Shown here: positions 23,821 through 52,870 of the stretch, piece after piece | Layout: each line of letters starts with the position of its first letter | Numbering within the stretch: the stretch's first letter is position 1 | Program-made: the position numbers and the translations under genes | The notes under the pieces: generated by a model | What the model was told of the DNA's origin: nothing | Database searches by the model: none | What the model saw: the letters and a program-made list of their open reading frames with translations, nothing else | Source of the DNA: Pseudomonas aeruginosa PAO1 | GTDB lineage: Bacteria > Pseudomonadota > Gammaproteobacteria > Pseudomonadales > Pseudomonadaceae | NCBI RefSeq assembly: GCF_000006765.1 | Contig: NC_002516.2 | Reading direction: 5' to 3' (one strand) | DNA: 64,000 bases

Positions 23821-25098
23821 CTACCCGCCGCGCCCGAGCAACCGCGCCAACCCCGCCAGCAGCCGCTCCAGGGCGCCCTGGTTGTTGCGCAGCACCTTCT
23901 CTCCGGCAGTGGCCATGGCCGTCGCGACCTCCGGCTGCGCCCACAGGCGCGCGAGGCCGTCGCACAGCTCGCCGGCATCCGTCACCTCGAGCAGCGCCCC
24001 GGCGTCGCGCAATTGCGCGGCGATGTCGAGGAAGTTGAACAGGTGCGGACCGGCGAACACCGGCTTGCCCAGGGCCGCCGGCTCCAGCAGGTTGTGCCCG
24101 CCGTTGGGCACCAGGCTGCCGCCGACGAAAGCGATGTCGGCCAGGGCATAGAGGAACAGCAGCTCGCCCATGGTATCGCCGAGCAGCACCTGGGTCGCGC
24201 GTGCCACCGGCTCGCCGCCGGAGCGCCGGACCGTGGCGAAGCCTTCGCGGCGGCATAGCTCGTGGACGCCGGCGAAGCGTTCCGGATGGCGCGGCACCAG
24301 GATCAGCAACGCGTCGGGACGCGTTTCCAGCAGGCGCCGGTGGGCTGCCAGGACGATCTCGTCCTCGCCGGCATGGGTGCTGGCGGCGATCCACAGCGGT
24401 CGCGCCGTCGCGTCCCATTCCTCGCGCAGGGCGGCAGCGGCCAGCGGCAGCTGCGGGTCGATGCGCAGGTCGAACTTGATCGAGCCGGTCACGCTGACGC
24501 ACTCAGGACGCGCGCCGAGACGACGGAAGCGCTCGGCCTCGGCCTCGGTCTGCACGGCGATCCAGGACAGCTCGGCGAGCATCGGCCGGGTCAGCCCGGC
24601 GAAGCGCGCGTAGCCACGCGCCGAGCGCTCGGACAGGCGCGCATTGGCCAGCGCCACCGGGATCCCGCGCACGGCGCAGGCATGGATATGGTTGGGCCAC
24701 AGCTCGGTTTCCATGATCACCGCCAGGCGCGGCCGCACCCGGTCGAGGAAGCGCGCCGCCGCCCAGGGCAGGTCGTAGGGCAGGTAGCAGTGCCGGACCT
24801 GCTCGCCGAACAATGCGCGGATGCGCTCCGAGCCGGTCGGGGTCATGCAGGTGACGGTGACCGGCAGCTGCGGATGGCGCTCCAGCAGCGCCCGCACCAT
24901 CGGCGCGGCGGCGATGCTCTCGCCCACCGAGACGGCGTGCACCCAGATGCCGCCGGGCGGCACCTCGGGCAAGGACAGGGAAAAACGCTCGCCGATGCGC
25001 TTGGCATAGGCCGGCGCCTGGCGCGCGCGCCACCACAGGCGCAACGCCACCAGCGGCAAGCCGAGGTGGAACAGCAGGGTATAGAGGGTACGGTTCAT
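23821..25098 (-). CDS. waaA: Kdo transferase (425 aa from MNRTLY)
   Basis: IWVHAVSVGE, YLPYDLP, ETELWPN, ASTHAGE, VPRHPERF, FVGGSL...GGHNLLEPA. Confidence 0.97.
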   Translation of the reverse strand: MNRTLYTLLFHLGLPLVALRLWWRARQAPAYAKRIGERFSLSLPEVPPGGIWVHAVSVGESIAAAPMVRALLERHPQLPVTVTCMTPTGSERIRALFGEQVRHCYLPYDLPWAAARFLDRVRPRLAVIMETELWPNHIHACAVRGIPVALANARLSERSARGYARFAGLTRPMLAELSWIAVQTEAEAERFRRLGARPECVSVTGSIKFDLRIDPQLPLAAAALREEWDATARPLWIAASTHAGEDEIVLAAHRRLLETRPDALLILVPRHPERFAGVHELCRREGFATVRRSGGEPVARATQVLLGDTMGELLFLYALADIAFVGGSLVPNGGHNLLEPAALGKPVFAGPHLFNFLDIAAQLRDAGALLEVTDAGELCDGLARLWAQPEVATAMATAGEKVLRNNQGALERLLAGLARLLGRGG

Positions 25099-25133: not shown

Positions 25134-26018
25134 TCAGCCGATGGCGCGCAGGTGGCGGGTGAAGGTTTCGCCGAGCCAGGCCGCCGCCGGGCCGAGCACC
25201 TCGTTGCGCCGCCAGACCAGTTCGACCACCAGCGCCGGCGGCGTCCAGTCGCTGGTCAGCTCCACCATCAGCCGGTCGTAGGTGGGGTACTGCACCACGT
25301 GCCGCGGTAGCCAGGCCCAGCCGAGGTTACGCATCAGCAGCTCGGCCATGGAATAGAAGCTGTCCAGCCGCCAGACCTGCGGGCTGATCTGCTCGCCGCC
25401 CGGATAGCCGCTCTGCTGGGGCACGATCAAAAGTTGCCGGTGCTGTGCCAGCTCGCGGCGACTGACCCGTTGCAGCCCGGCCAGCGGGTGGCCGGCACCG
25501 CACACCGTGACCATCTCGACGCTGCCGAGGCGCCGCCGCTCCAGCGACTCAGGCATGCGCTCATGGTGGAACAGCAGGCCGAGGTCAGCCTGCTCCTCGA
25601 GCAAACGACGGGTGACGTCACCCTGGCCGCCGCTGGACACCTGCACCTCCAGACTGGGAAAGCGCTGCGCCAGCGCTTCCAGGCTGTCCAGCACCGGCTG
25701 GTAGGGCATCGCCTCGTCCTGGGCCAGGCGCAGCCGCGGCTCCTCGCCGCGCGCCAGCCCCAGCGCGCGCCCCTGCAGGCGCTCGCACTGGCGCAGCACC
25801 TCGCGCGCCTCCGCCAGCAGCACCCGGCCCTCGTCGGTCAGGCGCGGCTGGCGTCCGCTGCTGCGTTCGAACAGGGTGACGCCGAGGTCCGCCTCCAGCA
25901 GCGCGATGCCGTTGCTCACCGCCGATTGCACCCGCTTCAGTTCGCGGGCGGCGGCAGAGAACGACTGGCGCTCGGCGACGCTGACGAACAGGCGGATCTG
26001 CTCCAGGTTCCACTGCAT
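25134..26018 (-). CDS. LysR-family transcriptional regulator
   Basis: N-terminal HTH SFSAAARELKRVQSAVSNGIALLEADLGVTLFERS; substrate-binding domain ending GWAWLP. Confidence 0.93.
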   Translation of the reverse strand: MQWNLEQIRLFVSVAERQSFSAAARELKRVQSAVSNGIALLEADLGVTLFERSSGRQPRLTDEGRVLLAEAREVLRQCERLQGRALGLARGEEPRLRLAQDEAMPYQPVLDSLEALAQRFPSLEVQVSSGGQGDVTRRLLEEQADLGLLFHHERMPESLERRRLGSVEMVTVCGAGHPLAGLQRVSRRELAQHRQLLIVPQQSGYPGGEQISPQVWRLDSFYSMAELLMRNLGWAWLPRHVVQYPTYDRLMVELTSDWTPPALVVELVWRRNEVLGPAAAWLGETFTRHLRAIG

Positions 26019-26019
26019 A

Positions 26020-26042
26020 ACCTATCTCCAATAAAGATAGGT
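26020..26042. promoter_or_regulatory. LTTR recognition site (T-N11-A inside a perfect 8-bp dyad)
   Basis: ACCTATCT-ccaataa-AGATAGGT; T26025-N11-A26037; abuts the LysR start codon; TAGAAT -10-like hexamer for emrE at 26071-26076. Confidence 0.75.
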
Positions 26043-26102
26043 AACGACTTTATCCCATCCGCCGGCTCCCTAGAATGGCCGCAGTTTCCGGAGGACCCCG
26101 CC

Positions 26103-26435
26103 ATGACCAACTATCTCTACCTCGCCATCGCCATCGCCGCCGAAGTGGTCGCCACCACCTCGCTGAAAGCCGTCGCCGGATTCAGCAAGCCACTGCCGCT
26201 GCTGCTGGTGGTGGGCGGCTACGTGCTCGCCTTCAGCATGCTCGTGCTGGTCATGCGCACCCTGCCGGTCGGCGTGGTCTACGCCATCTGGTCCGGACTC
26301 GGCATCGTCCTGGTCAGCCTGGTGGCGATGTTCGTCTACGGCCAGCGCCTGGACCCCGCCGCCCTCCTCGGCATCGGCCTGATCATCGCCGGCGTGCTGG
26401 TGATCCAGTTGTTCTCCCGCGCTTCGGGGCACTGA
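26103..26435 (+). CDS. emrE: SMR-family multidrug transporter, 110 aa (missed as a clean ORF by the track)
   Basis: MTNYLYLAIAIAAEVVATTSLK with conserved Glu14, PVGVVYAIWSGLG, four TM helices; GGAGG RBS. Confidence 0.93.
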   Translation: MTNYLYLAIAIAAEVVATTSLKAVAGFSKPLPLLLVVGGYVLAFSMLVLVMRTLPVGVVYAIWSGLGIVLVSLVAMFVYGQRLDPAALLGIGLIIAGVLVIQLFSRASGH

Positions 26436-26495
26436 ACGACCGTCGCGGGCGCAGGTTGTATACTGCGCCCTTTCCGTTCCCGATAAGGCAGCCCC

Positions 26496-27671
26496 ATGCC
26501 CCAAGCCCTTTCCACCGACATCCTCATCGTTGGCGGCGGTATCGCCGGCCTCTGGCTGAACGCCCGCTTGCGCCGGGCCGGCTACGCCACCGTGCTGGTG
26601 GAAAGCGCCAGCCTCGGCGGCGGACAGAGCGTGAAGTCGCAGGGGATCATCCACGGCGGCGCCAAGTACGCCCTGCATGGTGCCCTGACCGGCGCCTCCG
26701 AAGCCATCGCCGACATGCCGCGGCGCTGGCGCGCCTGTCTCGGCAGCGACGGCGAACTCGACCTGCGGGGCGTGCGCCTGCTTTCCGAGGCGCACTACCT
26801 GTGGTCGCCGGGCGGCCTGGCCGGCAGCCTTACCAGCTTCTTCGCCAGCAAGGCTGTGCGCAGTCGGGTCGAGCAGGCCAAGGGCGAGGATTTGCCTCCG
26901 GCGCTGCGCGACAAGGGGTTCAAGGGCAAGGCCTACCGCCTCACGGAAATCGTCTTCGACGTCCCCGACCTGATTCGCCGCCTGGCGGAACTGGCCGGCG
27001 ACAGCCTGCTCGCCGGCGAACGCATCGAACCGCTGCGCGAAGGCCGGGAACTGGCCGGCCTGTGCGTCGACGGCCGGGAGATCCGTGCCCAGCGCGTGGT
27101 GCTCAGCGCCGGTGCCGGCAACGAGGCGCTGCTCCGCGAACTGGGCCTGGAACAACCGGCCATGCAGCGGCGGCCGCTGCACATGGTGATGGTCAAGGCG
27201 GCGACCCTGAAACCGCTGTACGCCCACTGCCTGGGGGCAGGGCCGAAGCCACGGATCACCGTGACCACCCATCCGACCCGCGACGGCCAGTCGGTCTGGT
27301 ACCTCGGCGGCGACATCGCCGAAACCGATGGCGTGGCCCGCGACGAAGCCGCGCAGATCGCCGAAGCGCGTCGCGAACTGGCAAAGCTGCTGCCCTGGAT
27401 CGACCTCGGCCAGGCGCAGTGGGCCACCTTGCGGGTGGATCGCGCCGAGCCGGCACAGTCCAACCTGTTGCGTCCGGACAACGCCTTCCTCGCCGAACAG
27501 GGACGCCTGCTGGTCGGCTGGCCGACCAAGCTGGCGCTGGCCCCTGACTTCGCCGACCGGGTCTGCGCCCGCCTGGAAGAAGACGGCATCCGCCCCAGCG
27601 AACATGCCGCGCTGCCGCAACTGCCGCGTCCGCCGCTCGCCGAACCGGCCTGGGAGGTGGCCTTCGCATGA
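26496..27671 (+). CDS. FAD-dependent oxidoreductase (DAO/GlpA/L-2-hydroxyglutarate oxidase-like)
   Basis: DILIVGGGIAGL dinucleotide-binding motif; SVKSQGIIHGG; TATACT -10-like hexamer at 26459-26464. Confidence 0.85.
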   Translation: MPQALSTDILIVGGGIAGLWLNARLRRAGYATVLVESASLGGGQSVKSQGIIHGGAKYALHGALTGASEAIADMPRRWRACLGSDGELDLRGVRLLSEAHYLWSPGGLAGSLTSFFASKAVRSRVEQAKGEDLPPALRDKGFKGKAYRLTEIVFDVPDLIRRLAELAGDSLLAGERIEPLREGRELAGLCVDGREIRAQRVVLSAGAGNEALLRELGLEQPAMQRRPLHMVMVKAATLKPLYAHCLGAGPKPRITVTTHPTRDGQSVWYLGGDIAETDGVARDEAAQIAEARRELAKLLPWIDLGQAQWATLRVDRAEPAQSNLLRPDNAFLAEQGRLLVGWPTKLALAPDFADRVCARLEEDGIRPSEHAALPQLPRPPLAEPAWEVAFA

Positions 27672-28480
27672 TCAGGGATACCCTCCACGACCTGCACCGC
27701 CCGCTGGGCGACACCGGCCTGGCCGTTTCGCCGCTGGGCCTGGGCACCGTCAAGTTCGGCCGCGACCAGGGAGTGAAGTACCCTTCCGGCTTCACCATCC
27801 CCGACGACCGCGAAGCCGCCGACCTGCTGGCCCTGGCCCGCGACCTCGGCATCAACCTGATCGACACCGCCCCGGCCTACGGCCGCAGCGAGGAACGCCT
27901 CGGCCCGCTGCTGCGCGGCCAGCGCGAACATTGGGTGATCGTCAGCAAGGTCGGCGAAGAGTTCGTCGACGGCCAGTCAGTCTTCGACTTCTCCGCCGCG
28001 CATACCCGGCGCTCCGTCGAGCGCAGCCTGAAGCGCCTGGAGACCGACCGGATCGAACTGGTGCTGGTGCATTCCGATGGCAACGACCTGGATATCCTCG
28101 AGAACAGCGAGGTCTACCCGACTCTCGCCGCGCTCAAGCGCGAGGGCCTGATCGGCGCCTACGGACTCTCCGGCAAGACCGTCGAAGGTGGCCTGCGCGC
28201 CCTGCGCGAGGGCGATTGCGCGATGGTCACCTACAACCTGAACGAGCGCGCCGAGCGCCCGGTCATCGAGTACGCCGCGGCCCATGCCAAGGGCATCCTG
28301 GTGAAGAAGGCGCTGGCCAGCGGGCATGCCTGCCTGGGCGCCGGACAGGACCCGGTGCGCGCCAGCTTCGAACTGGTCTTCGACCAGCCCGGCGTCGCCG
28401 CCGCCATCGTCGGCACCATCAATCCGCTGCACCTGGCCCATAATGTCGCGATGGCCGCGCAAGCCCTGAAAAAGGCCTGA
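27668..28480 (+). CDS. Aldo-keto reductase
   Basis: SPLGLGT, GINLIDTAPAYG (Asp, Tyr), VSKVG (Lys), LVHSD (His) catalytic tetrad; ATGA overlap with the upstream gene. Confidence 0.92.
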   Translation: MIRDTLHDLHRPLGDTGLAVSPLGLGTVKFGRDQGVKYPSGFTIPDDREAADLLALARDLGINLIDTAPAYGRSEERLGPLLRGQREHWVIVSKVGEEFVDGQSVFDFSAAHTRRSVERSLKRLETDRIELVLVHSDGNDLDILENSEVYPTLAALKREGLIGAYGLSGKTVEGGLRALREGDCAMVTYNLNERAERPVIEYAAAHAKGILVKKALASGHACLGAGQDPVRASFELVFDQPGVAAAIVGTINPLHLAHNVAMAAQALKKA

Positions 28481-28501
28481 ACCATACATCGGCTGCAACA
28501 T

Positions 28502-28521
28502 CCGCGGGTTGACACCCGCGG
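28502..28521. other. Perfect 8-bp palindrome after the AKR gene, with TTGACA across its loop
   Basis: CCGCGGGT-tgac-ACCCGCGG; could be a terminator stem or an operator; no good -10 at 17 bp. Confidence 0.35.
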
Positions 28522-28648
28522 TGCATTCCGCTGCCATGTTCCTCCCGAACGAGCCGTATCCTGCCTGCCGCCCTCGCCTCCGGTGGCCGGTGCATCGAAC
28601 GTGAGCCTCCGTCCCGCCCCGGCGCGATGACCCGACAAGGAGCCCCGT

Positions 28649-29569
28649 ATGCCCCGTATGCTCGCCCGCAAGGATCCGTCCGCCTTCAAGACCCTGCCGC
28701 TGCTGGTAGAGGCCTCCCCGGACGGGCTGGTCTACCAGGCCCTCGGCCTGCCGCTGAACTTCCAGCAGATGCTCGTACGCCGCCGCCGCATGGAGGTAGC
28801 CGACCCGCAGCGCTTCGTCGCCGAGCTGGCCAACCTGGGGGTCTCGGTGCGCTTGACCCTGAACTGGCAGGGCCGCGACTACTGGGTGCTGGTCCGTCAG
28901 CGCCGGCTGGACCGCGGCGATACCGTGCTCAAGCTGATCTCCGGCTACGTACCGGCCCACGAACTGAACCTGCCGTTGCTCACGGCGATCCAGGAAGTCG
29001 CCGAGGAATGCCTGGTGGAGACCGCCGGCGGCTGGCTCGGCGGGCGCTTCGGCGACACCTGGCTGCCGACGCCCTACCAGGGTTCGCTGCGCTACCGGGA
29101 GAACAGCCACTTCGTCCTCACCCCGCTGTCCGGCGCCGCCCGTCCGGTGCAAGCCGGCAGCCTGCGCTTGCTGGAGCGCCCGCGCGCCTACGTACACCTG
29201 CCCACGGCCTCGCTGCAACTGGTCTACGACATGCGCCTGGAGCTGCCGCGCGATGCGCGCGAGCCGAGCCTCTACCATGTCGACGAGCGGCTCGAGAGCG
29301 GTCCGCTGGTGGCGCGCCTGGACCGTCGGCGCCCCGATCTCTACCTGCTGCCGCTGGACCAGGGGCGCCCCACCGGCGACCTGTTCACCCTGCGCAAGGG
29401 CCAGTTGCGCCCTGCGGCCACCCGCGGCCTGTGGTTGGCCGAGAGCTTTGCCGTACAGGACGGCTGGCTGGTGCATGAGGAACGCATCCGTTTCCGCGAC
29501 TGGCTGGCACTGTGGCCATCCAGCAACGGCGACCAGGCCGGCGGTGGACGCGACCGCGCCAGCGCCTGA
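28649..29569 (+). CDS. Conserved hypothetical protein with a degenerate Nudix-like box
   Basis: LKLISGYVPAHELNLPLLTAIQEVAEECLV = G-X5-E-X9-QE-X2-EE; no Walker A motif. Confidence 0.7.
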   Translation: MPRMLARKDPSAFKTLPLLVEASPDGLVYQALGLPLNFQQMLVRRRRMEVADPQRFVAELANLGVSVRLTLNWQGRDYWVLVRQRRLDRGDTVLKLISGYVPAHELNLPLLTAIQEVAEECLVETAGGWLGGRFGDTWLPTPYQGSLRYRENSHFVLTPLSGAARPVQAGSLRLLERPRAYVHLPTASLQLVYDMRLELPRDAREPSLYHVDERLESGPLVARLDRRRPDLYLLPLDQGRPTGDLFTLRKGQLRPAATRGLWLAESFAVQDGWLVHEERIRFRDWLALWPSSNGDQAGGGRDRASA

Positions 29570-29593
29570 ACCGGGCGGGCTTTGCCGCCCTTT

Positions 29594-30802
29594 CTACTTC
29601 AACTGGCTGGAAGACTTGCCGAGCAGGCGGCGGGCGACGATGAGCAGCTGGATCTGCTGGGTGCCCTCGAAGATGTCGAGGATCTTCGAGTCCCGCGCCC
29701 ACTTCTCCAACAGCTCATCCTCGGCGTAGCCGAGAGCGCCGGCCAGCTCCACGCACTTCAGGGTGATCTCGTTGGCCACCCGTCCAGCCTTGGCCTTGGC
29801 GATGGACGCTTCCTTCGAGTTGGGCAGCTTGTTGTCGGCCATCCATGCCGCCTTCAGGGTCAACAGGCGCGCTGCCTCCCACTCCGCCTCCAGGCGATAG
29901 AGAGTGGCCTCGGCGTGGCTGACGGTCAGCAGCGGCTTCCTGTAGTCGAACTTGCAGCCAGCCTTCTTCAGCAATTCGCGGGTCCGGTCCAGCGCCGCCT
30001 TGGCCACCCCGACAGCCATGCCGGCCACCAGCGGGCGGGTATTGTCGAAGGTCTCCATGACCCCGGCGAAACCCTTCTGCACGTCGACCTCGGCGTTGCC
30101 CAGCAGGTTCGCGGCCGGCACCCGGCAATCATTGAAACTGATCGAAGCGGTATCCGAAGCCTTGATCCCGAGCTTCTTCTCCAGGCGCGTCACGGTCATC
30201 CCCGGCGTGCCCTTCTCGACCACGAAGGACTTGATCGCCGCCCGCCCCAGGTTGCGGTTCAGGGTGGCCCAGACCACCACGGCATCGGCCCGCTCGCCGG
30301 AAGTGACGAAAATCTTCTCGCCGTTCAGTACATAGTGGTCGCCATCCTGGGTCGCGGTGGTGCGGATCGCCGCCGAGTCCGAGCCGCAGCCCGGCTCGGT
30401 GATCGCCATTGCCGCCCAGGTGCCGCCGAAGCGCTGCAACTGCTCCTCGTTGGCCACCGCGGCGATCGCCGCATTGCCCAGCCCCTGGCGCGGCATGGCC
30501 AGGAGCAGGCCGACGTCGCCCCAGCACAGTTCCATCACGCCGAGCAACGCCGACAGGTTGCCGCCGTTCTTGATGCCCTCCTCTACCTGCTTGCCGGCGC
30601 GCTTGCTCGCCGAGGTCGCACCGACAGCCTCGGGCGAGCCGCTGTTCATGCCGTCCAGCAAGGCCGCGAGCAGGTCCAGCTCCTTCGGATAGGCGTGTTC
30701 GGCCTTGTCGTACTTGCGCGAGATCGGCCGGAAATAGTTTTCCGCGACCTGATGCGCCTGGTTGGCCAGGCTGCGGAATTTCTTCGGGGTTTCCAGGTAC
30801 AT
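29594..30802 (-). CDS. Acyl-CoA dehydrogenase, catalytic subunit (FadE23-like)
   Basis: AMAITEPGCGSDS, NGEKIFVT, KLGIKASDTA, KILDIFEGTQQIQ with catalytic Glu. Confidence 0.92.
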   Translation of the reverse strand: MYLETPKKFRSLANQAHQVAENYFRPISRKYDKAEHAYPKELDLLAALLDGMNSGSPEAVGATSASKRAGKQVEEGIKNGGNLSALLGVMELCWGDVGLLLAMPRQGLGNAAIAAVANEEQLQRFGGTWAAMAITEPGCGSDSAAIRTTATQDGDHYVLNGEKIFVTSGERADAVVVWATLNRNLGRAAIKSFVVEKGTPGMTVTRLEKKLGIKASDTASISFNDCRVPAANLLGNAEVDVQKGFAGVMETFDNTRPLVAGMAVGVAKAALDRTRELLKKAGCKFDYRKPLLTVSHAEATLYRLEAEWEAARLLTLKAAWMADNKLPNSKEASIAKAKAGRVANEITLKCVELAGALGYAEDELLEKWARDSKILDIFEGTQQIQLLIVARRLLGKSSSQLK

Positions 30803-30850
30803 GTCGATTCCTCGTTCACTCGTCGCGGCGGACCGCGCACTCGCTCGGGT

Positions 30851-32140
30851 TCACAGGTGCAGGCCGCCGGCCATCAGCGCTACCGCGCGCAGGTCGCGGT
30901 ACCAGCGCTCGGCCGGATGCTCCTTGGTGAAGCCGTGGCCACCGAGCAGCTGCACCGCGTCGGTGCCGATCTTCATCGCCTTCTCGGCGCACAGCAGCCG
31001 CGCCAGGTAAGCCTCGCGCTGGAACGGCTGGCCGCGCTCGGCCAGGGCGCAGGCGCGCCAGACCATCAGGCGCATGGCGTCCAGTTCGATGGCGATGTCG
31101 GCGACCATGAAGGCGACCCCCTGGCGATGGCTGATCGGCTCGCCGAAGGCCTCACGCTCGTTGCAGTAGGCGATCACGTAGTCCAGCGCCGCCTGTCCGG
31201 TGCCCAGCGCCAGGGCACACCAGGCCAGGGACGCGTGATCGAGGAAGGCCCGGTAGTCGAAATGCTCGGCGGCCAGGCGGTTGTCCGCCGGCACCTTGAC
31301 GCTCTTCAGGCGCAACCGGGCGGTGCCGCCGGCCTTCAGTCCCATCGCCGGCTCGGCACGTCGCTCGACGCCCTTGGCGGAGGCTTCCACCAGGAACAGC
31401 GCAGGCCCCTCGTCGGTCTTCGCCGCGACGATCAGGCGGCTGGCCTCCAGGCCGCGCAGGACCAGGCATTTCTCTCCGGAAAGCAGGTAGTGACTGCCCT
31501 TGCGCCGGGCGCGGGTCGCCAGTTTCTGCGGGTCGAACAGCAGACTCGGCTCGTTGACCGCGATGGCGGTGAGCGGCGCCCCCTCTTCGCTGACGAACGC
31601 CGGCAGCCACTGCGCCTGCTGCGAGGGGCTGCCCCAGCGGCGGATGCAGTTGGCCGCCGACAACGGCACCAGCAGGGCCGCCGCCAGCGTCAGGTCGCCC
31701 TTGGCCAGGGCCTCGGCGATAAGGGCAGTGGTCACCGTGGTGCGCTCACCGGCCATGCCGCCGTGCACCTCGCCGACCCCATAGTGGGTCAGGCCCAGCT
31801 CCAGCGCCTGGTTGAGCAGTTCCGCCGGCAGGCTGGCCTCGGCATCCGCGTCATGAGCCAGCGGACGCAACACCTCCAGGGCGAAGCCTTCGAGCATGTC
31901 CACCAGCATCTGCTGGTCGTCGGAGAACGACAGGTCGAACAACCCGTCCGGATCGGCCTTGCGCGGTCCCTTCGCCTGCTTCGCCGAACGCTCGCTGGCC
32001 AGGCGGAAGCCGGTACGGCTGCCGCTGTAGAGCAGTTTTTCGAAGGGTTTGCGAAGATTGAAGCGATCCGGCCAGTCGGCCTGGGCGACACGGTTCAGTA
32101 CAGCCAGGGCACGGCCCTGTACATCGGTGCTCATGGGCAT
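30851..32140 (-). CDS. Acyl-CoA dehydrogenase-like subunit lacking the C-terminal catalytic Glu (FadE24-like), 429 aa from MPMSTD
   Basis: REAFGEPI, QLLGGHGF, ERWYRDLRAVALMAGG (no xEGT); VNEPSLLFD instead of TEP..GSD; GGAG RBS before ATG 32140. Confidence 0.88.
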   Translation of the reverse strand: MPMSTDVQGRALAVLNRVAQADWPDRFNLRKPFEKLLYSGSRTGFRLASERSAKQAKGPRKADPDGLFDLSFSDDQQMLVDMLEGFALEVLRPLAHDADAEASLPAELLNQALELGLTHYGVGEVHGGMAGERTTVTTALIAEALAKGDLTLAAALLVPLSAANCIRRWGSPSQQAQWLPAFVSEEGAPLTAIAVNEPSLLFDPQKLATRARRKGSHYLLSGEKCLVLRGLEASRLIVAAKTDEGPALFLVEASAKGVERRAEPAMGLKAGGTARLRLKSVKVPADNRLAAEHFDYRAFLDHASLAWCALALGTGQAALDYVIAYCNEREAFGEPISHRQGVAFMVADIAIELDAMRLMVWRACALAERGQPFQREAYLARLLCAEKAMKIGTDAVQLLGGHGFTKEHPAERWYRDLRAVALMAGGLHL

Positions 32141-32267: not shown

Positions 32268-33692
32268 TCAGCCTTTCTGGCGGATCTTCTCGACGATGGC
32301 GGTGGTGGAGCTGTTCTCCACCAGGCCGAGCACCCGTACCTCGCCGCCGTAGGCCTTGACGATCTGCGCGCCGACCACCTGCTCGACGCCGTAATCGCCG
32401 CCCTTGACCAGCACGTCCGGACGCACCTGCTCGAGCAGGCGCTCAGGAGTGTCTTCGGCGAAGCTCACCACCCAGTCCACCGCGCCGAGCCCGGCGAGTA
32501 CCGCCATGCGCCGGTCCACCGAGTTGATCGGCCGGCCAACGCCCTTCAGGCGAGTGACCGAGGCGTCGTCGTTGACCCCGACGATCAGGCGGTCGCCCTG
32601 GGCGCGCGCCTGTTCGAGGTAGGTCACGTGGCCGGCGTGAAGGATGTCGAAGCAGCCATTGGTGAAGACGATCTTCTCGCCGTGGGCGCGGGCGTCTTCG
32701 ATTGCCAGCAGCAATTGCTCCAGGCCCAGCACGCCACGCTCGGAACCCTGCTCGCGCTGCACCGCGCGACGCAGTTCGGGCGCGCTGATCGCCGCGGTAC
32801 CCAGCTTGCCGACCACGATGCCGGCGGCCAGGTTGGCCAGACCCACCGCGGAAGGCAGCTCCTCGCCGGCGGCAAGCGCCGCGGCCAGGGTGGAGATGAC
32901 CGTATCGCCGGCACCGGTGACGTCGAACACTTCCCGCGCCCGCGCCGGCAGGTGCAGGGCCGGCTGGCCATGGCGGAGCAGGGTCATGCCATGCTCGCCG
33001 CGGGTCACCAGCAAGGCACCGAGGTCGAGTTCGCTCATCAGCGCCTGGCCCTTGGCGACCAGTTCGGCTTCGTCGGCGCAACGGCCGACGATGGTCTCGA
33101 ATTCGGACAGGTTCGGGGTGATCAGGCTGGCGCCGCGATAGATGGCGAAGTCCTTGCCCTTGGGATCGGCCAGTACCGGAATGTTGCGCGCCCGCGCCGC
33201 CTGGATCAGCACCTGGTGGTTCTGTAGCGCGCCCTTGCCGTAGTCGGACAGCACCAGCACCTTGACCTTGGCCAGCAGCGACTCGACGTCCACGGCCAGG
33301 GCCGCCGCGTCGGTGCGGAACGGTTCCTCGAAGTCGACCCGCAGCAGTTGCTGGTGGCGACTCATGACCCGCAGCTTGACGATGGTCGGCTGGCTATCGA
33401 TGCGCTGGAAGCGCGCGTCCACTCCAGCGGCCTTGAGGCTGTTGGCCAGGCTGTCGGCGGCCTCGTCGCGGCCGGTGACGCCGACCAGCAAGGCCTGCGC
33501 GCCCAGCGCGGCGATGTTCAGCGCGACGTTGGCGGCGCCGCCGGGGCGGTCCTCGTGCTGTTCGACGCGGACCACCGGCACCGGGGCCTCCGGCGAAATG
33601 CGCGAAGTCGCGCCATGCCAGTAGCGGTCGAGCATCACATCACCGACCACCAACACCGGGGCCTGGTCGAAACGGGGCATGGACAACTTCAT
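32268..33692 (-). CDS. hldE: Bifunctional heptose-7-phosphate kinase / heptose-1-phosphate adenylyltransferase (474 aa from MKLSMP)
   Basis: VVGDVMLDRY, SRISPEAPVPV, DVTGAGD, FTNGCFDILHAGH, VKGGDY. Confidence 0.97.
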   Translation of the reverse strand: MKLSMPRFDQAPVLVVGDVMLDRYWHGATSRISPEAPVPVVRVEQHEDRPGGAANVALNIAALGAQALLVGVTGRDEAADSLANSLKAAGVDARFQRIDSQPTIVKLRVMSRHQQLLRVDFEEPFRTDAAALAVDVESLLAKVKVLVLSDYGKGALQNHQVLIQAARARNIPVLADPKGKDFAIYRGASLITPNLSEFETIVGRCADEAELVAKGQALMSELDLGALLVTRGEHGMTLLRHGQPALHLPARAREVFDVTGAGDTVISTLAAALAAGEELPSAVGLANLAAGIVVGKLGTAAISAPELRRAVQREQGSERGVLGLEQLLLAIEDARAHGEKIVFTNGCFDILHAGHVTYLEQARAQGDRLIVGVNDDASVTRLKGVGRPINSVDRRMAVLAGLGAVDWVVSFAEDTPERLLEQVRPDVLVKGGDYGVEQVVGAQIVKAYGGEVRVLGLVENSSTTAIVEKIRQKG

Positions 33693-33732: not shown

Positions 33733-35544
33733 TCAGCCGACAGGCGCCGGCGCCTGCTCATCCAGTCCCATCGCGTGCAGCCGCGCATAATGGCCGTTCT
33801 GCGCCAGCAGTTCGGCGTGGCTGCCGCGCTCGACGATCTGCCCCTGGTCCATCACCAGGATCAGGTCGGCCTTCTCGATGGTCGACAGGCGGTGGGCGAT
33901 CACCAGGGTGGTGCGCCCCTTCATCACTTCGTCCAGCGCCGCCTGGATATGCCGCTCCGACTCGGTGTCCAGCGCCGAGGTCGCCTCGTCGAGGATCAGC
34001 AGGGGCGCGTCCTTGAGCAGCGCCCGGGCGATCGCCAGACGCTGGCGCTGGCCGCCGGAAAGCAGCACGCCATTCTCGCCGACCTCGGTGTCGAAGCCTT
34101 GCGGCAGGTTGTCGATGAACTCCTTGGCGTTGGCAGCCTTCGCCGCCCGCTCGATTTCCTCGCGCGGCGCGCCAGCCAGGTCGCCGTAGGCGATGTTGTT
34201 GGCCACGCTGTCGTTGAACAGCGTGACCTGCTGGGTCACCAGGGCGATGTGGCGGCGCAGGTTGCGCAGGCGATAATCCTCGACTTCAACGCCATCAAGG
34301 AGGATCTTGCCGTCATTGTGCTGGTAAAAGCGCGGAACCAGGTTGGCCAGGGTCGATTTGCCGCTACCGGAACGGCCGACCAGGGCGATCATCTGCCCGG
34401 GCTCGGCGATGAAACTGATGTCATCCAGCACCTGCTTGTCGGTTCCGGGATAACGGAAGCTCAGGTTGCGCACTTCCAGGCGCCCGCTGACCCGCTCCTT
34501 CTCGACGGTACCCTGGTCTTCCTCCGCCGCTTCGTCGAGCTGCTCGAAGATGCTCTCGGCGCCGGCGACGCCGCGCTGGACCGTGGAACTGACTTCGGAA
34601 AGCTGGCGGATCGGCTTGGGCAACAGGCCCGCCGCGGTGATATAGGCCACCAGGTCGCCGGCCGAGGCGTCCCCGCGCAGCCACAGCACGAGGAACATCA
34701 GTATCGCCATGGCGACGTAGATCACCAATTGCAGCATCGGCGTGTAGACCGCGCCGGTCTTGGTCATCCGCAACTGCTTGTCGGTATTGCTCTGGCTGGC
34801 GTCGAGGAAGCGCTTCTCTTCATAGGCTTCGCCGCCGAAGCTGCGCACCACCCGGTAGCCCTGGATGGTTTCCGAGGCGACGTGGGTGACGTCGCCCATG
34901 GCCACCTGGATCTTCTTGCTCTGCTTGCGGAACTTGCGGCTGGCGGTAGTCACCATCACCGCGATGACCGGCAGGATCGCCAGCATCACCAGGGTCAGCT
35001 TCCAGTTCATCCACAGCAGGTAGAGGAACAGGAAGACCACGGTCAGGCCCTCACGGATCACCACCTTGATGGCATCCGTGGCCGCTCCGGTGACCATGGT
35101 CACGTTGAAGGTGATGCGCGAGATCAGGTGGCCGGAGCTGTGCGTGTCGAAATAGCGGTTCGGCAGCACCAGCAGCTTGTTGAACAGGGCGACCCGCAGG
35201 TCATGCACCAGCCCCAGGGAAACCTTGGCGAGGAAGAAGTTGCCGAGGAACGAGCCCAGCCCCTGCCAGGCAGCGATCAGGATGATCAGCAACGGCACCG
35301 CGTAGACCAGGTGCAAGTCGCGCAACCAGGGCCACTGCACATTCGGAAACAATGCCGCGTCAGGATTGGAGAGGCCGTCGACGAAATACTTGAGGATGCC
35401 CGCCAGCATCGGCTGGGTCGACGCGAAGATCAGGAAACCGACGATGCTGAGTAGGAACATTCCGATGTAGGGCTTCACGTAACCCAACAGGCGGAAATAG
35501 ATCTTGAGACTGGAAGGTCCGGGATTCTGAGGACTATCGCTCAT
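33733..35544 (-). CDS. msbA: Lipid A-core flippase ABC transporter
   Basis: Six-TM domain plus GRSGSGKS Walker A, LSGGQRQR signature, LILDEATSALD. Confidence 0.96.
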   Translation of the reverse strand: MSDSPQNPGPSSLKIYFRLLGYVKPYIGMFLLSIVGFLIFASTQPMLAGILKYFVDGLSNPDAALFPNVQWPWLRDLHLVYAVPLLIILIAAWQGLGSFLGNFFLAKVSLGLVHDLRVALFNKLLVLPNRYFDTHSSGHLISRITFNVTMVTGAATDAIKVVIREGLTVVFLFLYLLWMNWKLTLVMLAILPVIAVMVTTASRKFRKQSKKIQVAMGDVTHVASETIQGYRVVRSFGGEAYEEKRFLDASQSNTDKQLRMTKTGAVYTPMLQLVIYVAMAILMFLVLWLRGDASAGDLVAYITAAGLLPKPIRQLSEVSSTVQRGVAGAESIFEQLDEAAEEDQGTVEKERVSGRLEVRNLSFRYPGTDKQVLDDISFIAEPGQMIALVGRSGSGKSTLANLVPRFYQHNDGKILLDGVEVEDYRLRNLRRHIALVTQQVTLFNDSVANNIAYGDLAGAPREEIERAAKAANAKEFIDNLPQGFDTEVGENGVLLSGGQRQRLAIARALLKDAPLLILDEATSALDTESERHIQAALDEVMKGRTTLVIAHRLSTIEKADLILVMDQGQIVERGSHAELLAQNGHYARLHAMGLDEQAPAPVG

Positions 35545-35651: not shown

Positions 35652-36302
35652 ATGCGAGTCATAGACTACCCCTCCTACTTGCAGTTGCGTGACAACGCAG
35701 AAGTGCTGGAAGCCGATGGTCATGGGGACAAGGTACTGCGTCTGCGCGACGGGTCCTTCCTCAAGCTGTTTCGCCGCAAGCGCCTGATTTCCTCCGCAGC
35801 CCTGTTCCCCTATGCGGAGCGCTTCGCCCGCAATGCCAGCGAACTGGCGCGGCGCGGCATCGTCTGCCCGAAGGTGCTGGACGTATTGCGGATCCCACAT
35901 ATCCAGCGCGACGCGGTGCACTACGAGCCGCTACCGGGGCAGACCCTCCGCCAACTCGACCGCAACGACCCGGAGTGCGGCGACGCAGTCCGGACGCAAC
36001 TGGGCGAGCTGATCGCCGCGCTGCACGCCAAGGGGGTGTACTTCCGCTCGCTGCACCTGGGCAACGTGGTGCGCACGCCGGAAGGCCGGATGGGCCTGAT
36101 CGACATCGCCGACCTGCGGGTCCAGCGCTCGGCGCTCAGCGCCGCCCAGCGCATTCGCAATTTCAAGCACCTGCTGCGCTACGAACAGGATCGAACCTGG
36201 TTCCTCGACGACAGCGAGCACCTGGTGCTCAAGGCCTATCTCCGCAGCAGCCAGGTCCACTGGACACTCGAGCAGCTCCTCAAGCAACTGCAACTGGATT
36301 GA
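35652..36302 (+). CDS. Kdo/WaaP-family kinase-like protein ('toluene tolerance' type)
   Basis: FLKLF, ERFARN, YFRSLHLGNVV catalytic-loop analogue, LIDIAD; operonic with waaL (7-nt gap). Confidence 0.75.
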   Translation: MRVIDYPSYLQLRDNAEVLEADGHGDKVLRLRDGSFLKLFRRKRLISSAALFPYAERFARNASELARRGIVCPKVLDVLRIPHIQRDAVHYEPLPGQTLRQLDRNDPECGDAVRTQLGELIAALHAKGVYFRSLHLGNVVRTPEGRMGLIDIADLRVQRSALSAAQRIRNFKHLLRYEQDRTWFLDDSEHLVLKAYLRSSQVHWTLEQLLKQLQLD

Positions 36303-48671: not shown

Positions 48672-49789
48672 GAGGCCTCCCCGAGGATCAGGTCGGCGGC
48701 GCGCTGCGGCATGCTGTAGAGGTCGGCGTGATCGGCGTAGGCCAGGCCATTGCGCGACCAGGCGGCGCGCGCCGGAGCGTCCTCCAGCATTTCCGCGAGC
48801 AGGCGGTTGAGACTGTCCTGCTCGAAGGGACTCGGCAGCACCCGCCCGGCGTCGGCCTCGGCGATGTAGTGGGCATAGCCGCAGACATCGGTCACCAACA
48901 CCGGCAGGCCGGAGACCAGCGCCTCCAGCAGCACCGTACCGGTGTTCTCGTTGTAGGCCGGGTGGATCAGCAGGTCGGCGCCGAGCAGGAAGCGCGGGAT
49001 ATCGCTGCGCCCCTTGAGGATCTGTACCTGGTCGTTGAGACCGAGGGCGGCGATCTGTAGCAGGAACGGCTTGGGATCGTCCTGGCCGATGGCGATCAGC
49101 CGGGTACGCCTGCGCAACGCCTTGGGCAGCGCGGACAGCGCCTTCAGGCTGCGATCCAGGCCCTTGGTCTTGAAGCCGGAACCGATCTGCACCAGCAGCA
49201 GGTCGTCCTCCTCCAGGCCGAACTCGCGGCGGAATTCCGCACGCACGTCCGCGGCGTTGGCCGGCGCCCGGCGATCCTGGCTGATCCCCGGCGGCAGCAG
49301 ATGGAAACGCTCGGCCTGGGTGCCGTAGTGCTTGACGAAGAGCGGCTGCTGCACCTCGGAGATCATCAGGATCTCGGTCTTCGAGGCCGGGTCGAACACT
49401 GCCCGTTCGTAGCCGGCGAAGTGGCGGTAGCGGCCCCACTGGCGGTACAGCGGGTTGCGCAAGGTCTGGGCCTTTTCCTCGAAACAGGCGTCGGCGGCGT
49501 AGTAGACATCCAGTCCGGGCATCTTGTTGAAGCCGATCACCCGCTGCACCGGGCGCCTGTCCAGGTCGGCGCGGACCCACGCGGTGAACTTCTCGTTGCG
49601 CCGGTGGTTGAAGATCGAGCGCACCGGGGCCACCAGCACTTCGAAGCCGTCCGGCACGTCGCCCTCCCAGATCAGGGTATAGACGCGGATGTCGTGCCCG
49701 CGCCGCTGGCATTCCAGGGCGATGCGCATGAAGTCACGCTGCAGGCCGCCGAAGGGGAAGTATTTGTAGAGGATGAACGCCAGGGTCAT
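48668..49789 (-). CDS. waaG: Core glycosyltransferase I (373 aa from MTLAFI)
   Basis: YKYFPFGGLQRDF, GFNKMPGLDVYYAAD, IGSGFKTKG, PAYNENTGTVLLEA. Confidence 0.93.
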   Translation of the reverse strand: MTLAFILYKYFPFGGLQRDFMRIALECQRRGHDIRVYTLIWEGDVPDGFEVLVAPVRSIFNHRRNEKFTAWVRADLDRRPVQRVIGFNKMPGLDVYYAADACFEEKAQTLRNPLYRQWGRYRHFAGYERAVFDPASKTEILMISEVQQPLFVKHYGTQAERFHLLPPGISQDRRAPANAADVRAEFRREFGLEEDDLLLVQIGSGFKTKGLDRSLKALSALPKALRRRTRLIAIGQDDPKPFLLQIAALGLNDQVQILKGRSDIPRFLLGADLLIHPAYNENTGTVLLEALVSGLPVLVTDVCGYAHYIAEADAGRVLPSPFEQDSLNRLLAEMLEDAPARAAWSRNGLAYADHADLYSMPQRAADLILGEAS

Positions 49790-50853
49790 CGGAGGGTCTC
49801 CGGGGCCAGCAGCATGGCCTCCAGCTGGGTGGCCACGCGCTGGGGATTCAGCCGGGTGAAGCACAGCGGCTGCTCACGCTTGAGATCGAACAGTTTGCGA
49901 TCCTCTTCGGTCGGCTGGTAGGTACAAGTCTTCTTCAGGCACGGCGCACAGGGGAAGTCGCTGCCCAGGTGGACCTGGGAACGCCCGTAGGCGCCGGTGA
50001 AGCCAGGATTGGTCGGGCCGAACAGCGACAGCGTCGGCACGTCCAGCGCCGCCGCCAGGTGACCGAGGCCGGTATCCACCGCCACGCAGGCGCGCGCGCC
50101 GGCAAGCACCTTGGCCATGCCGGCCAGGGATAATCTGGGGAGTACCGCGGCATTTTCCAACCCCGCCGCCAGGCGCCCGGCCCGCTCCCGCTCGGCGGCG
50201 CTGCCCCAGGGCAGGCGCACCGACCAGCCGCGCTCGCACATGCGCTCGGCCAGTTCGCGCCAGTAGGCTTCCGGCCAATGCTTGGTGACCCAGGTAGTAC
50301 CGTGCAGGAACACCAGGTACGGCGCGCCAGGGTCGGCGTCGGCCAACTGCTCGCGGTCCAGGCCATAGTCACCGACCGACTCGGGCAACGGGTAGTCCAG
50401 CGCCTGGGCGAACAACTGGCGCGTGCGCTCCACCGCATGCTGTCCCCAGGCGACCGGATAGGCACGGCGATAGAAGCGGCTGGCGAGCGGCTCGCGCGCC
50501 GAGTCGCGATCGAGACCGGCGACCGGCGTCTTGCCCACGTAGCGGGTCAGCCAGGCACTCTTCAGCAGCCCCTGGGCGTCGATCACCAGGTCATAGTCGA
50601 CTTCCTTCAGGCGCTGCTTGAAGCGCCGCCATTCGCCGTTGCGCAGGGTCTGCCAGAGGTTCTTGCGCCAGCGCCGGATCGCCACCGGGATCACCCGCGC
50701 CACCGCCGGATGCCAGGCGGGAATCTCGGCGAAACCTTCCTCCACCACCCAGTCGAACTGGATGCCGGGAATCGCCCGGGCGGCGTCGGTAAGCGCCGGC
50801 AGGGTGTGGATCACGTCGCCGAGGGACGAGGTCTTGACCAGCAGCACCCTCAT
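49786..50853 (-). CDS. waaC: Heptosyltransferase I (355 aa from MRVLLV)
   Basis: KTSSLGDVIH, DAQGLLKS, VDTGLGHLAAA, LFGPT. Confidence 0.95.
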   Translation of the reverse strand: MRVLLVKTSSLGDVIHTLPALTDAARAIPGIQFDWVVEEGFAEIPAWHPAVARVIPVAIRRWRKNLWQTLRNGEWRRFKQRLKEVDYDLVIDAQGLLKSAWLTRYVGKTPVAGLDRDSAREPLASRFYRRAYPVAWGQHAVERTRQLFAQALDYPLPESVGDYGLDREQLADADPGAPYLVFLHGTTWVTKHWPEAYWRELAERMCERGWSVRLPWGSAAERERAGRLAAGLENAAVLPRLSLAGMAKVLAGARACVAVDTGLGHLAAALDVPTLSLFGPTNPGFTGAYGRSQVHLGSDFPCAPCLKKTCTYQPTEEDRKLFDLKREQPLCFTRLNPQRVATQLEAMLLAPETLR

Positions 50854-51887
50854 CCGGCGACCTCGGCAGGGTCGCCGACCAGCCGCTCCAGGGCTTGCAA
50901 TACCAGGCCAGGCGGCAGCTCGCGGAGGCAATTGTAGTGGCCGAAGCGACAGGTGCGCTCGAAGCACGGGCTGCACTCGAGACCGAGGCGGACGATCTCC
51001 ACCCGGTCCGCCAGCGGCGGGGTGAACTGCGGCGAGGTGGAGCCATAGACGCCCACCAGCGGGCGATCCAGCGCGGCCGCCACGTGCATCAGGCCGGAAT
51101 CGTTGGACACCACCGCGCCAGCGCAGGACATCAGGTCGATGGCCTCGGCCAGCGAAGTCTCCCCGGCAAGATTGAAGGACTCCTCGCGCAACCCCGGAAT
51201 CAGGCGCTGGCGAATCTCCTCTCCACCGGGATGGTCGTTCTTCGAGCCGAACAGCCAGACCTGCCAGCCGGCACGGATCTTCGCCTCGGCGACCGCGGCG
51301 TAGTGTTCCGCCGGCCAGCGCTTGGCCTCGCCGAACTCGGCGCCGGGACAGAGCGCCAGCACCGGGCGGTCCAGGCTCAGGGCGAACTTGTCGAGCGCCG
51401 CCTGGCGGCTGCCGTCGTCGATCCGCAGGCGCGGCTGCGGATAGGGCTTCGGCAACTCCACGCCCGGCTCGAAGGCCAGGGCCATGAAGCGTTCGATCAT
51501 CAGCGGATAGCGCTGCTTGTCGAGCTTGCGGATGTCATTGAGCAGCCCGTAGCGCATCTCGCCGCGCCAGCCGGTACGCTTCGGTATTCCGGCGAACCAG
51601 GGCACCAGCGCCGACTTCAGCGAGTTGGGCAGCAGGATCGCCTGCTCGTACTGACCGCGCAGGCCGCGTCCGATCCGGCGCCGTGTGGCGACGTCCATCA
51701 CCCCGTGGCCGAGCGGGAAGCTCAGGGCCTGGCGCACCTCGGGCATGCGCTCGAGGATCGGTCGGCTCCACTCGGGCGCCAGCACGTCGATCACGCACTC
51801 GGGATGCCGCTGGCGCAGACACTGGAACAGGGTCTGCGCCATCACCATGTCCCCCACCCAGGAGGGACCTACGATCAGAATTCTCAT
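50850..51887 (-). CDS. waaF: Heptosyltransferase II
   Basis: GPSWVGDMVM, LPNSLKSA, CPGAEFGEAKRWP, NDSGLMHVAAA. Confidence 0.96.
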   Translation of the reverse strand: MRILIVGPSWVGDMVMAQTLFQCLRQRHPECVIDVLAPEWSRPILERMPEVRQALSFPLGHGVMDVATRRRIGRGLRGQYEQAILLPNSLKSALVPWFAGIPKRTGWRGEMRYGLLNDIRKLDKQRYPLMIERFMALAFEPGVELPKPYPQPRLRIDDGSRQAALDKFALSLDRPVLALCPGAEFGEAKRWPAEHYAAVAEAKIRAGWQVWLFGSKNDHPGGEEIRQRLIPGLREESFNLAGETSLAEAIDLMSCAGAVVSNDSGLMHVAAALDRPLVGVYGSTSPQFTPPLADRVEIVRLGLECSPCFERTCRFGHYNCLRELPPGLVLQALERLVGDPAEVAG

Positions 51888-51905
51888 TCAGGCTCCGGAA
51901 ATGAT

Positions 51906-51927
51906 CAGGGAGGCTTTCGCCTCCCTG
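51906..51927 (-). other. Stem-loop between ilvE and waaF
   Basis: Minus strand CAGGGAGGC-gaaa-GCCTCCCTG, 9-bp stem with GNRA loop, weak U tract. Confidence 0.6.
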
Positions 51928-51946
51928 TCACACCCTTCTTCGGTGC

Positions 51947-52870
51947 TTACTTGACCAGGGTACGCCACTCGGCGTGGGCCTCGGTCTTGCCGCTGACCAG
52001 GTCGAAATAGGCTTTCTGCAGCTTTTCGGTGACCGGGCCACGGCGGCCGGCGCCGATCTTGCGACCGTCCACTTCGCGGATCGGCGTGACTTCCGCGGCA
52101 GTGCCAGTGAAGAAGGCCTCGTCGGCGATGTACACCTCGTCGCGGGTGATGCGCTTCTCGACCAGTTTAAAACCGTGTTCGGCGGCCAGGGTCAGGATAG
52201 TGTTACGAGTGATGCCGTTCAGGCAGGCGGTGACTTCCGGGGTGTAGATCACGCCATCCTTGATGATGAAGATGTTCTCGCCGGAGCCTTCGGCCACGTA
52301 GCCTTCCGGATCGAGCATCATGGCCTCGTCGGCGCCGCCGGAGATCGCTTCCTGGAGGGCCAGCATCGAGTTGATGTAGGCGCCGTTGGACTTGGCGCGG
52401 GTCATCGAGATGTTGACGTGGTGGCGGGTGAAGGAACTGGTGCGCACCTTGATGCCTTGCTGCAGGGCTTCCTCGCCCATGTAGGCGCCCCAGCTCCAGG
52501 CGGCGATGATCACATGGACCTTCAGGCCGCTGGCGCGCAGGCCCATGCCTTCGCTTCCGTAGAACACCATCGGGCGGATATAGGCGCTTTCCAGGTTGTT
52601 CTCGCGCACGGCGGCGCGGGTCGCCTCGTTGATCTCGTCGCGGCTGTACGGGATCTGCATGTTCATGATGTGCGCGGAGTCGAACAGCCGGTCGGTATGC
52701 GCCTGCAGGCGGAAGATCGCCGTGCCCTGCGGGGTGTCGTAGGCGCGCACGCCCTCGAACACGCCCATTCCATAGTGCAGGGTATGGGTCAGCACGTGCG
52801 TGGTCGCGTCGCGCCACTGCACCAGTTCACCGTCATACCAGATCACGCCATCACGATCGGCCATCGACAT
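51947..52870 (-). CDS. ilvE: Branched-chain amino acid aminotransferase
   Basis: LHYGMGVFEGVRAY, RAKSNGAY (PLP Lys), EGSGEN, GITR, FTGTAAEVTP. Confidence 0.98.
   Translation of the reverse strand: MSMADRDGVIWYDGELVQWRDATTHVLTHTLHYGMGVFEGVRAYDTPQGTAIFRLQAHTDRLFDSAHIMNMQIPYSRDEINEATRAAVRENNLESAYIRPMVFYGSEGMGLRASGLKVHVIIAAWSWGAYMGEEALQQGIKVRTSSFTRHHVNISMTRAKSNGAYINSMLALQEAISGGADEAMMLDPEGYVAEGSGENIFIIKDGVIYTPEVTACLNGITRNTILTLAAEHGFKLVEKRITRDEVYIADEAFFTGTAAEVTPIREVDGRKIGAGRRGPVTEKLQKAYFDLVSGKTEAHAEWRTLVK

Follow-up and report, generated by a model that had tools for sequence, protein, structure and literature searches.

We analyzed a 64,000-nucleotide stretch of Pseudomonas aeruginosa PAO1 (contig NC_002516.2; hereafter the window) around two adjacent genes, PA4991 and PA4992. 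PA4991 encodes a flavin adenine dinucleotide (FAD)-dependent oxidoreductase of the DAO/GR2 family (26496..27671, +; PF01266, PDB 5EZ7), and PA4992 a short NADP(H)-binding aldo-keto reductase (AKR; 27668..28480, +; PF00248, PDB 4EXA/4EXB). Reading from left to right, the locus consists of waaA, the gene for the 3-deoxy-D-manno-octulosonic acid (Kdo) transferase (23821..25098, −; NF004388, 645 bits), a LysR-family regulator gene (25134..26018, −; Pfam HTH_1 and LysR_substrate), a small multidrug resistance (SMR, EmrE/Qac-type) efflux gene (26103..26435, +; Pfam Multi_Drug_Res), the flavoenzyme gene and the AKR gene. These are followed by PA4993, a conserved hypothetical gene whose product has a possible divergent Nudix fold according to an AlphaFold2 (AF2) model and Foldseek (28649..29569, +), two acyl-CoA dehydrogenase genes (29594..32140, −; Pfam), hldE, which encodes the bifunctional heptose-7-phosphate kinase / heptose-1-phosphate adenylyltransferase (32268..33692, −; NCBIfam NF008454, 775 bits against a cut-off of 521), and the gene for the lipid A-core flippase, msbA (33733..35544, −; TIGR02203, 851 bits). 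Further along lies an ilvE-waaF-waaC block (49786..52870, −), in which ilvE (51947-52870, −; TIGR01122) precedes the genes for heptosyltransferases II (waaF, 50850-51887, −; TIGR02195) and I (waaC, 49786-50853, −; NF008204/TIGR02193). The 391-aa PA4991 sequence is found unchanged on thousands of P. aeruginosa contigs.

A preliminary description of this DNA, made from its sequence alone, had proposed that the two genes form a two-enzyme ADP-heptose 6-epimerase system that replaces or complements HldD, and much of its account of the locus is borne out. The genes do overlap by ATGA (shared at 27668-27671), Pfam and NCBIfam annotation places them between waaA and hldE-msbA and puts ilvE before waaF, and hldD is missing from the window (the best tblastn hit with E. 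coli HldD has E = 5). The statement that the pair sits inside a lipopolysaccharide (LPS) cluster holds only loosely: waaA and hldE-msbA flank it, but five other genes intervene.

The pair had also been credited with its own −10-like element, TATACT (26459..26464, +), 31 nt upstream of the flavoenzyme ATG. The hexamer is present, but a promoter scan gives no sigma-70 match there, since the −35 element is missing. In P. aeruginosa it forms part of the loop in a terminator-like hairpin 3' of the SMR gene (26447..26470, +), which has an 8-bp stem with seven G-C pairs and is followed by a TTTCCGTTCC tail. Across ten Pseudomonas species, TATA(C/A)T is invariant in all ten at a similar distance from the ATG, whereas its flanking sequence and the stem of the hairpin are variable. 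Such conservation makes a real −10 element plausible, and because the hexamer is kept while its surroundings drift, we accept it as a probable one. With the hexamer conserved throughout the genus and the stem not, a terminator and a promoter may overlap in P. aeruginosa only. No Rfam family was found in 25900-29700.

PA4991 belongs to the DAO/GR2 flavoenzymes. It matches Pfam DAO (PF01266) at 72.3 bits (cut-off 27.9) and, over its full length, PDB 5EZ7, “flavoenzyme PA4991” (E = 5e-259), whose paper describes bound FAD and the G13-G18 segment; residues 54-67 and 106-125 of PA4991 form disordered loops. A full-library search for its family returned 724 cluster representatives at E < 1e-30, aligned end to end at 36-54% identity, and H53, R226, H244, R316 and K345 are invariant in 30 diverse members. 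Neither PA4991 nor PA4992 comes near the cut-off of any NCBIfam equivalog model. The published structural work describes PA4991 as a soluble monomer with non-covalent FAD, encoded in one operon with PA4992, and names glycerol-3-phosphate (G3P) dehydrogenase, glycine oxidase and their kin as its closest structural relatives, at < 18% identity (PMC4741190). The kinship with GlpD/GlpO consists of the shared GR2/DAO fold and of the conserved residues around the flavin (GlpD His53, Arg316 and Lys345), of which the Arg is a phosphate or carboxylate anchor and binds phosphate in the GlpD/GlpO enzymes (PMC4741190). Otherwise PA4991 departs from that group: its matches to G3P dehydrogenase models reach 25-27 bits against cut-offs of 352-425 and cover only the N-terminal 70 residues, it is without their extra domain, and it was inactive on G3P and dihydroxyacetone phosphate as well as on 41 amines and amino acids, in a panel that did not include sugar phosphates (PMC4741190).

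PA4992 (270 aa) is a member of the AKR superfamily, with a Pfam Aldo_ket_red (PF00248) score of 119 bits (cut-off 24) and full-length matches to its own structures, PDB 4EXA/4EXB (E = 1e-177). It binds NADP+ in 4EXA, with a triad of Asp66, Tyr71 and Lys94 (PMC3539698). Among 36 diverse orthologues the complete tetrad D66, Y71, K94 and H135 is invariant, as are three residues of a basic loop, K29, R32 and K37; in the crystals this loop is disordered (residues 33-41). Among solved structures, those closest to PA4992 are sugar-acting AKRs, together with a chain of PDB 9wk1 (“DON 3-epimerase”, deoxynivalenol being DON). Both structures were solved in a drug-target structural programme, although the literature assigns the two proteins no function. 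The statement in the preliminary description that both genes are essential is borne out by the literature: they score as such in PAO1 and PA14 transposon libraries and in transposon sequencing (Tn-seq) in sputum (PMC4741190).

To place the pair in a wider context, we compared its neighborhoods within and outside the genus. Within the genus, a genome-contig scan with a 30-member alignment returned matches that were all Pseudomonas and so speaks to within-genus synteny only; 80 Pseudomonas species keep the fixed order waaA...flavoenzyme-AKR-PA4993...hldE-msbA, and conservation of synteny inside a single genus proves little. Outside it, we used 80 metagenome loci retrieved with an alignment headed by a sequence from outside Pseudomonas, plus five individually fetched loci, and grouped the flavoenzymes at 65% identity into 34 non-Pseudomonas lineages, which are 40-50% identical to PA4991. 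The two genes behave as a unit in this material. The AKR gene lies directly downstream of the flavoenzyme gene in 37 of the 39 non-Pseudomonas loci with room for it, and the two reading frames overlap by 1-14 nt wherever genes were called.

The unit keeps company with heptose and Kdo genes. In 24 of the 34 lineages, hldE, gmhA, waaA, waaF or waaC lies within 3 kb of the pair (hldE in 21, waaA in 9, waaF in 7, gmhA in 4), so that the linkage to LPS genes seen in P. aeruginosa recurs in other genomes; four lineages are clearly without such neighbors, and six are represented by contigs too short to judge. At least six different arrangements, in both orientations, relate the pair to the heptose genes. 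The commonest, with about ten clusters, is (glnE)-ilvE-hldE-pair-waaF on one strand. Others are gmhA-pair convergent with hldE-waaC; gmhA followed by waaA divergent from pair-hldE-msbA; hldE-pair-gmhA-waaA; hldE-pair-waaA; and KdoO-waaF-hldE divergent from the pair. Tight packing is seen in Sulfurivermis fontis, in whose complete genome hldE, the flavoenzyme gene, the AKR gene, waaF and genes for a GT2 and a GT4 follow one another with gaps of +4, −10, −1, −8 and −4 nt; hldE and waaF exceed the NCBIfam equivalog cut-offs here, and hldE-flavoenzyme-AKR-waaF apparently forms one operon, to judge by this spacing. Two of these heptose/Kdo gene clusters also carry oxygenase genes, a KdoO-type Kdo hydroxylase gene (L084 6475-7389, +) and a 2OG-Fe(II) oxygenase-like gene (L085 15547-16173, −).

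Could this neighborhood be simply inherited, with the two proteins being housekeeping oxidoreductases that have no role in LPS? At least four lineages put the pair among unrelated genes, and the five genes that part it from waaA and hldE in P. aeruginosa are unrelated as well. On the other side, hldE lies within 3 kb in 21 of the 28 judgeable lineages, against an estimated chance of about 0.2% per lineage for a given gene (assuming one hldE per genome), and does so through at least six rearranged architectures. A link that is kept through repeated rearrangement is a signature of functional coupling, and we regard the housekeeping explanation as improbable. A different possibility is that the pair belongs to the inner core but acts on another component, such as Kdo 8-phosphate, arabinose 5-phosphate or a hydroxyl of the lipid-linked core, so as to make or modify a conserved feature other than heptose C6. 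The waaA neighbor in nine lineages and KdoO in one are in keeping with this, every terminally phosphorylated sugar would have a G3P-like end, and the preliminary description itself allowed a lipid-linked substrate. Yet hldE is by far the commoner neighbor (21 of the 24 lineages), it is gmhA or waaF that adjoins the pair in operon-like runs, and PA4991 is a soluble monomer; we consider such a substrate rather unlikely. That the pair works somewhere in heptose or inner-core synthesis is a proposition we hold to be quite probable.

Several observations weigh against so tidy a picture. Rather than being drawn at random, the 80 metagenome loci are the top scorers among the first 600 pattern matches, and neighbors were named by tblastn to reference proteins, few of which assignments were checked against curated models. 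In L083 the pair stands beside serine-pathway genes, with a canonical NUDIX gene abutting it (L083 12030-12602, −); in L104, L112 and L167, which form one clade, it lies between an acyl-CoA dehydrogenase gene and a CCA-adding/poly(A) polymerase gene; and in L122 it adjoins mnmG and a nicotinate phosphoribosyltransferase gene. The AKR gene is missing downstream in two loci, L114 and L161, in the latter of which the neighbors are genes for an ankyrin protein and a permease. The link of the pair to heptose and LPS genes is therefore strong, not universal.

Some details of these exceptional loci can be recorded here. Genes of the CCA-adding/poly(A)-polymerase family are found at L112 12026-13399, L125 3072-4211 and L167 12164-13354, directly downstream of the pair in L112 and L125. 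A shared acyl-CoA dehydrogenase link with P. aeruginosa was considered and rejected: the L104, L112 and L167 copies are 78-83% identical to one another and about 25% identical to PA4994/PA4995, and reflect the synteny of one clade. A protein search with the L161 flavoenzyme found only metagenome-assembled genomes of Gammaproteobacteria among its matches.

Our literature searches found no paper tying PA4991 or PA4992 to heptose or LPS, and a survey of core-oligosaccharide genes in P. syringae begins its cluster at hldE. What was already known is the essentiality of the two genes, their structures and the binding of FAD and NADP; what is new here is the association of the pair with heptose genes across lineages.

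In its strict form, the idea that the pair replaces HldD as the ADP-heptose 6-epimerase of the organism draws on two facts: hldD is present neither in the window nor in any fetched locus, and in the commonest arrangement the pair occupies the site just upstream of waaF that belongs to hldD in E. coli. P. aeruginosa, however, has a functional rfaD/hldD, PA3337, elsewhere in its genome: deletion mutants differ in outer-membrane permeability and in polymyxin tolerance (PMC10269820). Replacement is refuted for that species, and we consider it very unlikely in general. In the fetched loci, canonical hldD was not found in the 10 kb around the pair, where only distant short-chain dehydrogenases/reductases (SDRs) below the HldD cut-offs occur; this result covers loci rather than whole genomes. 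Nor are the two proteins HldD-like in sequence, with neither PA4991 nor PA4992 matching the HldD models (TIGR02197 / NF008360) or the Epimerase model.

Three SDR genes in these loci were considered as hldD and rejected. The SDR beside gmhB/gmhA in L085 shares 25% identity with E. coli HldD and reaches 104 bits where the cut-off is 274.6; the one that ends the S. fontis locus is also under the HldD cut-off; and the one in the P. fluorescens group, at 117 bits against 274.6, is GalE-like and falls below the GalE cut-off as well. The last of these is a 301-aa SDR epimerase/dehydratase encoded directly downstream of hldE (L115 13020-13922, −), and the same gene follows hldE in L032, L053, L064, L065, L078, L079, L082, L137 and L151.

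Whereas replacement fails in P. aeruginosa, the suggestion that the pair complements HldD receives indirect support. The rfaD gene is deletable, and an insertion mutant is also viable (PMC11120684); waaP, on the other hand, cannot be inactivated in P. aeruginosa, where inner-core phosphates are needed for viability (PMC3147165). A published table lists rfaD as activated by Anr and at low oxygen, together with hemN and nrdD, which encode oxygen-independent versions of enzymes used aerobically (PMC8575079), and the gene is also among the anaerobically regulated genes in two further studies (PMC8087004, PMC13086522). By analogy with such aerobic and anaerobic counterparts, this suggests that an aerobic flavin/NADPH pair and an oxygen-independent HldD performing the same inversion would fit better than replacement. 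An aerobic twin of HldD would be expected to take just such a form, an NADPH reductase joined to a flavin oxidase that depends on O2 or the respiratory chain. Under such a division, the pair should come out of aerobic transposon screens as essential and rfaD as dispensable, in agreement with the record.

Our preferred reading, which we hold with slightly more doubt than belief, is that PA4991-PA4992 is a translationally coupled ADP-heptose/inner-core module that performs a two-step inversion of a heptose carbinol. The flavoenzyme would first act on a glycero-manno-heptose, either phosphorylated or ADP-activated, converting one of its secondary hydroxyls to a ketone and passing the electrons to O2 or the respiratory chain; the AKR would then reduce the ketone with NADPH from the opposite face. 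The net result would be an irreversible inversion of one center, most economically C6, the center that HldD inverts. The pair would thereby serve as the main aerobic route to L-glycero-D-manno-heptose in P. aeruginosa, and HldD (rfaD) as the oxygen-independent route. We infer which substrate and which carbon are used, what accepts the electrons and how the work is shared with HldD. The substrate is probably anionic, because the flavoenzyme has an invariant Arg/His/Lys set and further invariant basic residues in its substrate domain and the AKR has its basic loop. The C6(OH)-C7H2-OPO3 end of heptose 7-phosphate would resemble glycerol 3-phosphate, so inversion might precede nucleotide activation rather than occur on ADP-heptose. 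Operons of the gmhA-pair type fit the heptose 7-phosphate stage and those of the hldE-pair-waaF type the ADP-sugar stage, and gene order cannot choose between them. Taken as a whole, the interpretation given in the preliminary description is partly supported.

Two considerations count against the same-product model in particular. It assumes that aerobic expression of rfaD is too low, and the authors who deleted rfaD attribute its dispensability to the use of D-glycero-D-manno-heptose (D,D-heptose) (PMC10269820). The pair might instead be a metabolite repair or detoxification system that clears or recycles a harmful side product of the heptose pathway, such as a released keto-heptose or a wrong isomer, whose accumulation on loss of the pair would poison the pathway. 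The neighborhood supports this as well as it supports an inversion module, essentiality despite an intact canonical pathway would be explained, and a Nudix-like neighbor would suit nucleotide-sugar housekeeping. Against it, repair systems are not usually built from an oxidase and a subsequent reductase, there is no known candidate for the toxic compound and, to our knowledge, E. coli runs the heptose pathway without such a pair. Overall we think repair unlikely.

The Nudix-like neighbor is PA4993. It has no Pfam match even at E ≤ 10 and no NCBIfam or PHROG match, and its AF2 model has a predicted local distance difference test (pLDDT) score of 90. The top 50 Foldseek matches to this model are all Nudix ADP-ribose/ADP-sugar pyrophosphatases, at weak values (E = 1.5e-3 to 2e-2, TM 0.2-0.4). 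The sequence contains a degenerate Nudix box, G99-x5-E105-x9-QEVAEE, against the canonical GX5EX7REUXEEXGU, with G99, E116, E119 and E120 invariant. A Nudix, ADP-sugar-hydrolase-like identity for PA4993 is a lead from the model, not an assignment, and the predicted fold would be consistent with the ADP-sugar theme at the locus. The gene accompanies the pair only in Pseudomonas and two relatives (L142, L159). As a conserved third member of the module it was rejected, being non-homologous to the gene that follows the AKR in L085, which is weakly GT2-like. A fuller scheme, possible but doubtful in our view, would have many Gammaproteobacteria use an irreversible two-enzyme aerobic route to L-glycero-D-manno-heptose, perhaps at heptose 7-phosphate, with HldD, where it occurs, as an oxygen-independent, Anr-controlled isozyme and PA4993 as a divergent Nudix protein policing the ADP-heptose pool.

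Compared with known systems, the inversion module proposed here would share with HldD its net reaction, in which a heptose carbinol is inverted by way of a keto intermediate, and it shares the genomic company of hldE, waaF and waaC. HldD, however, is a single SDR with tightly bound NADP+, redox-neutral and reversible, whereas the pair consists of two unrelated folds (DAO and AKR) that would depend on an external acceptor and NADPH, and hence be irreversible if the proposal holds; there is no sequence relationship. In the 3-epimerization of deoxynivalenol by DepA/DepB, a dehydrogenase oxidizes the carbinol and an AKR reduces the product to the epimer; this pathway is catabolic, with a mycotoxin as its substrate and an oxidase that depends on PQQ (pyrroloquinoline quinone). 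The 9wk1 chain is among the nearer solved relatives of PA4992. A third parallel is DprE1/DprE2, the mycobacterial decaprenylphosphoryl-ribose 2'-epimerase, in which DprE1 has a VAO-type fold, DprE2 is an SDR and the substrate is a lipid-linked ribose. There, the keto-sugar made by an FAD oxidase is reduced to the epimer by a second protein, an NAD(P)H reductase (PMC4366402, PMC9993113), and the two genes are adjacent, serve an essential cell-envelope step and constitute a drug target. The Pfam families of PA4991 and PA4992 differ from FAD_binding_4/VAO and SDR; the pair would be at most an analogue of DprE1/DprE2, not a homologue.

PA4991 and PA4992 have been known as essential for two decades, and their placement in heptose or inner-core synthesis gives a short list of substrates. 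If the inversion module is real, it would account for a deletable rfaD where the heptose region is indispensable, bring an aerobic/anaerobic enzyme pair into LPS synthesis, and provide a Gram-negative counterpart of the mycobacterial DprE1/DprE2 drug target. As ADP-heptose and its precursors are innate-immune agonists, an extra control point on their pool would be of wider interest.

Outside Pseudomonas the LysR gene is not beside the pair, and the SMR gene adjoins it only in Pseudomonas loci; the SMR efflux gene is not part of the module of the pair, and the LysR regulator is probably tied to the SMR gene instead. Most Pseudomonas species lack the two acyl-CoA dehydrogenase genes, which P. 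aeruginosa shares with a minority of the genus; this distribution points to their insertion into an older PA4993-hldE junction. P. aeruginosa strain CP118566.1 has, between these genes and hldE, an additional asparagine-synthase-like gene (L002 16175-18073, +) that is not in the window. After msbA, the window contains a gene for a 216-aa protein (35652-36302, +) that has no Pfam match, is 39-63% identical across Pseudomonas and appears as the kinase PA4998 in an earlier study (PMC8005017); downstream of it lies a Wzy_C-family O-antigen ligase gene (36310-37515, +).

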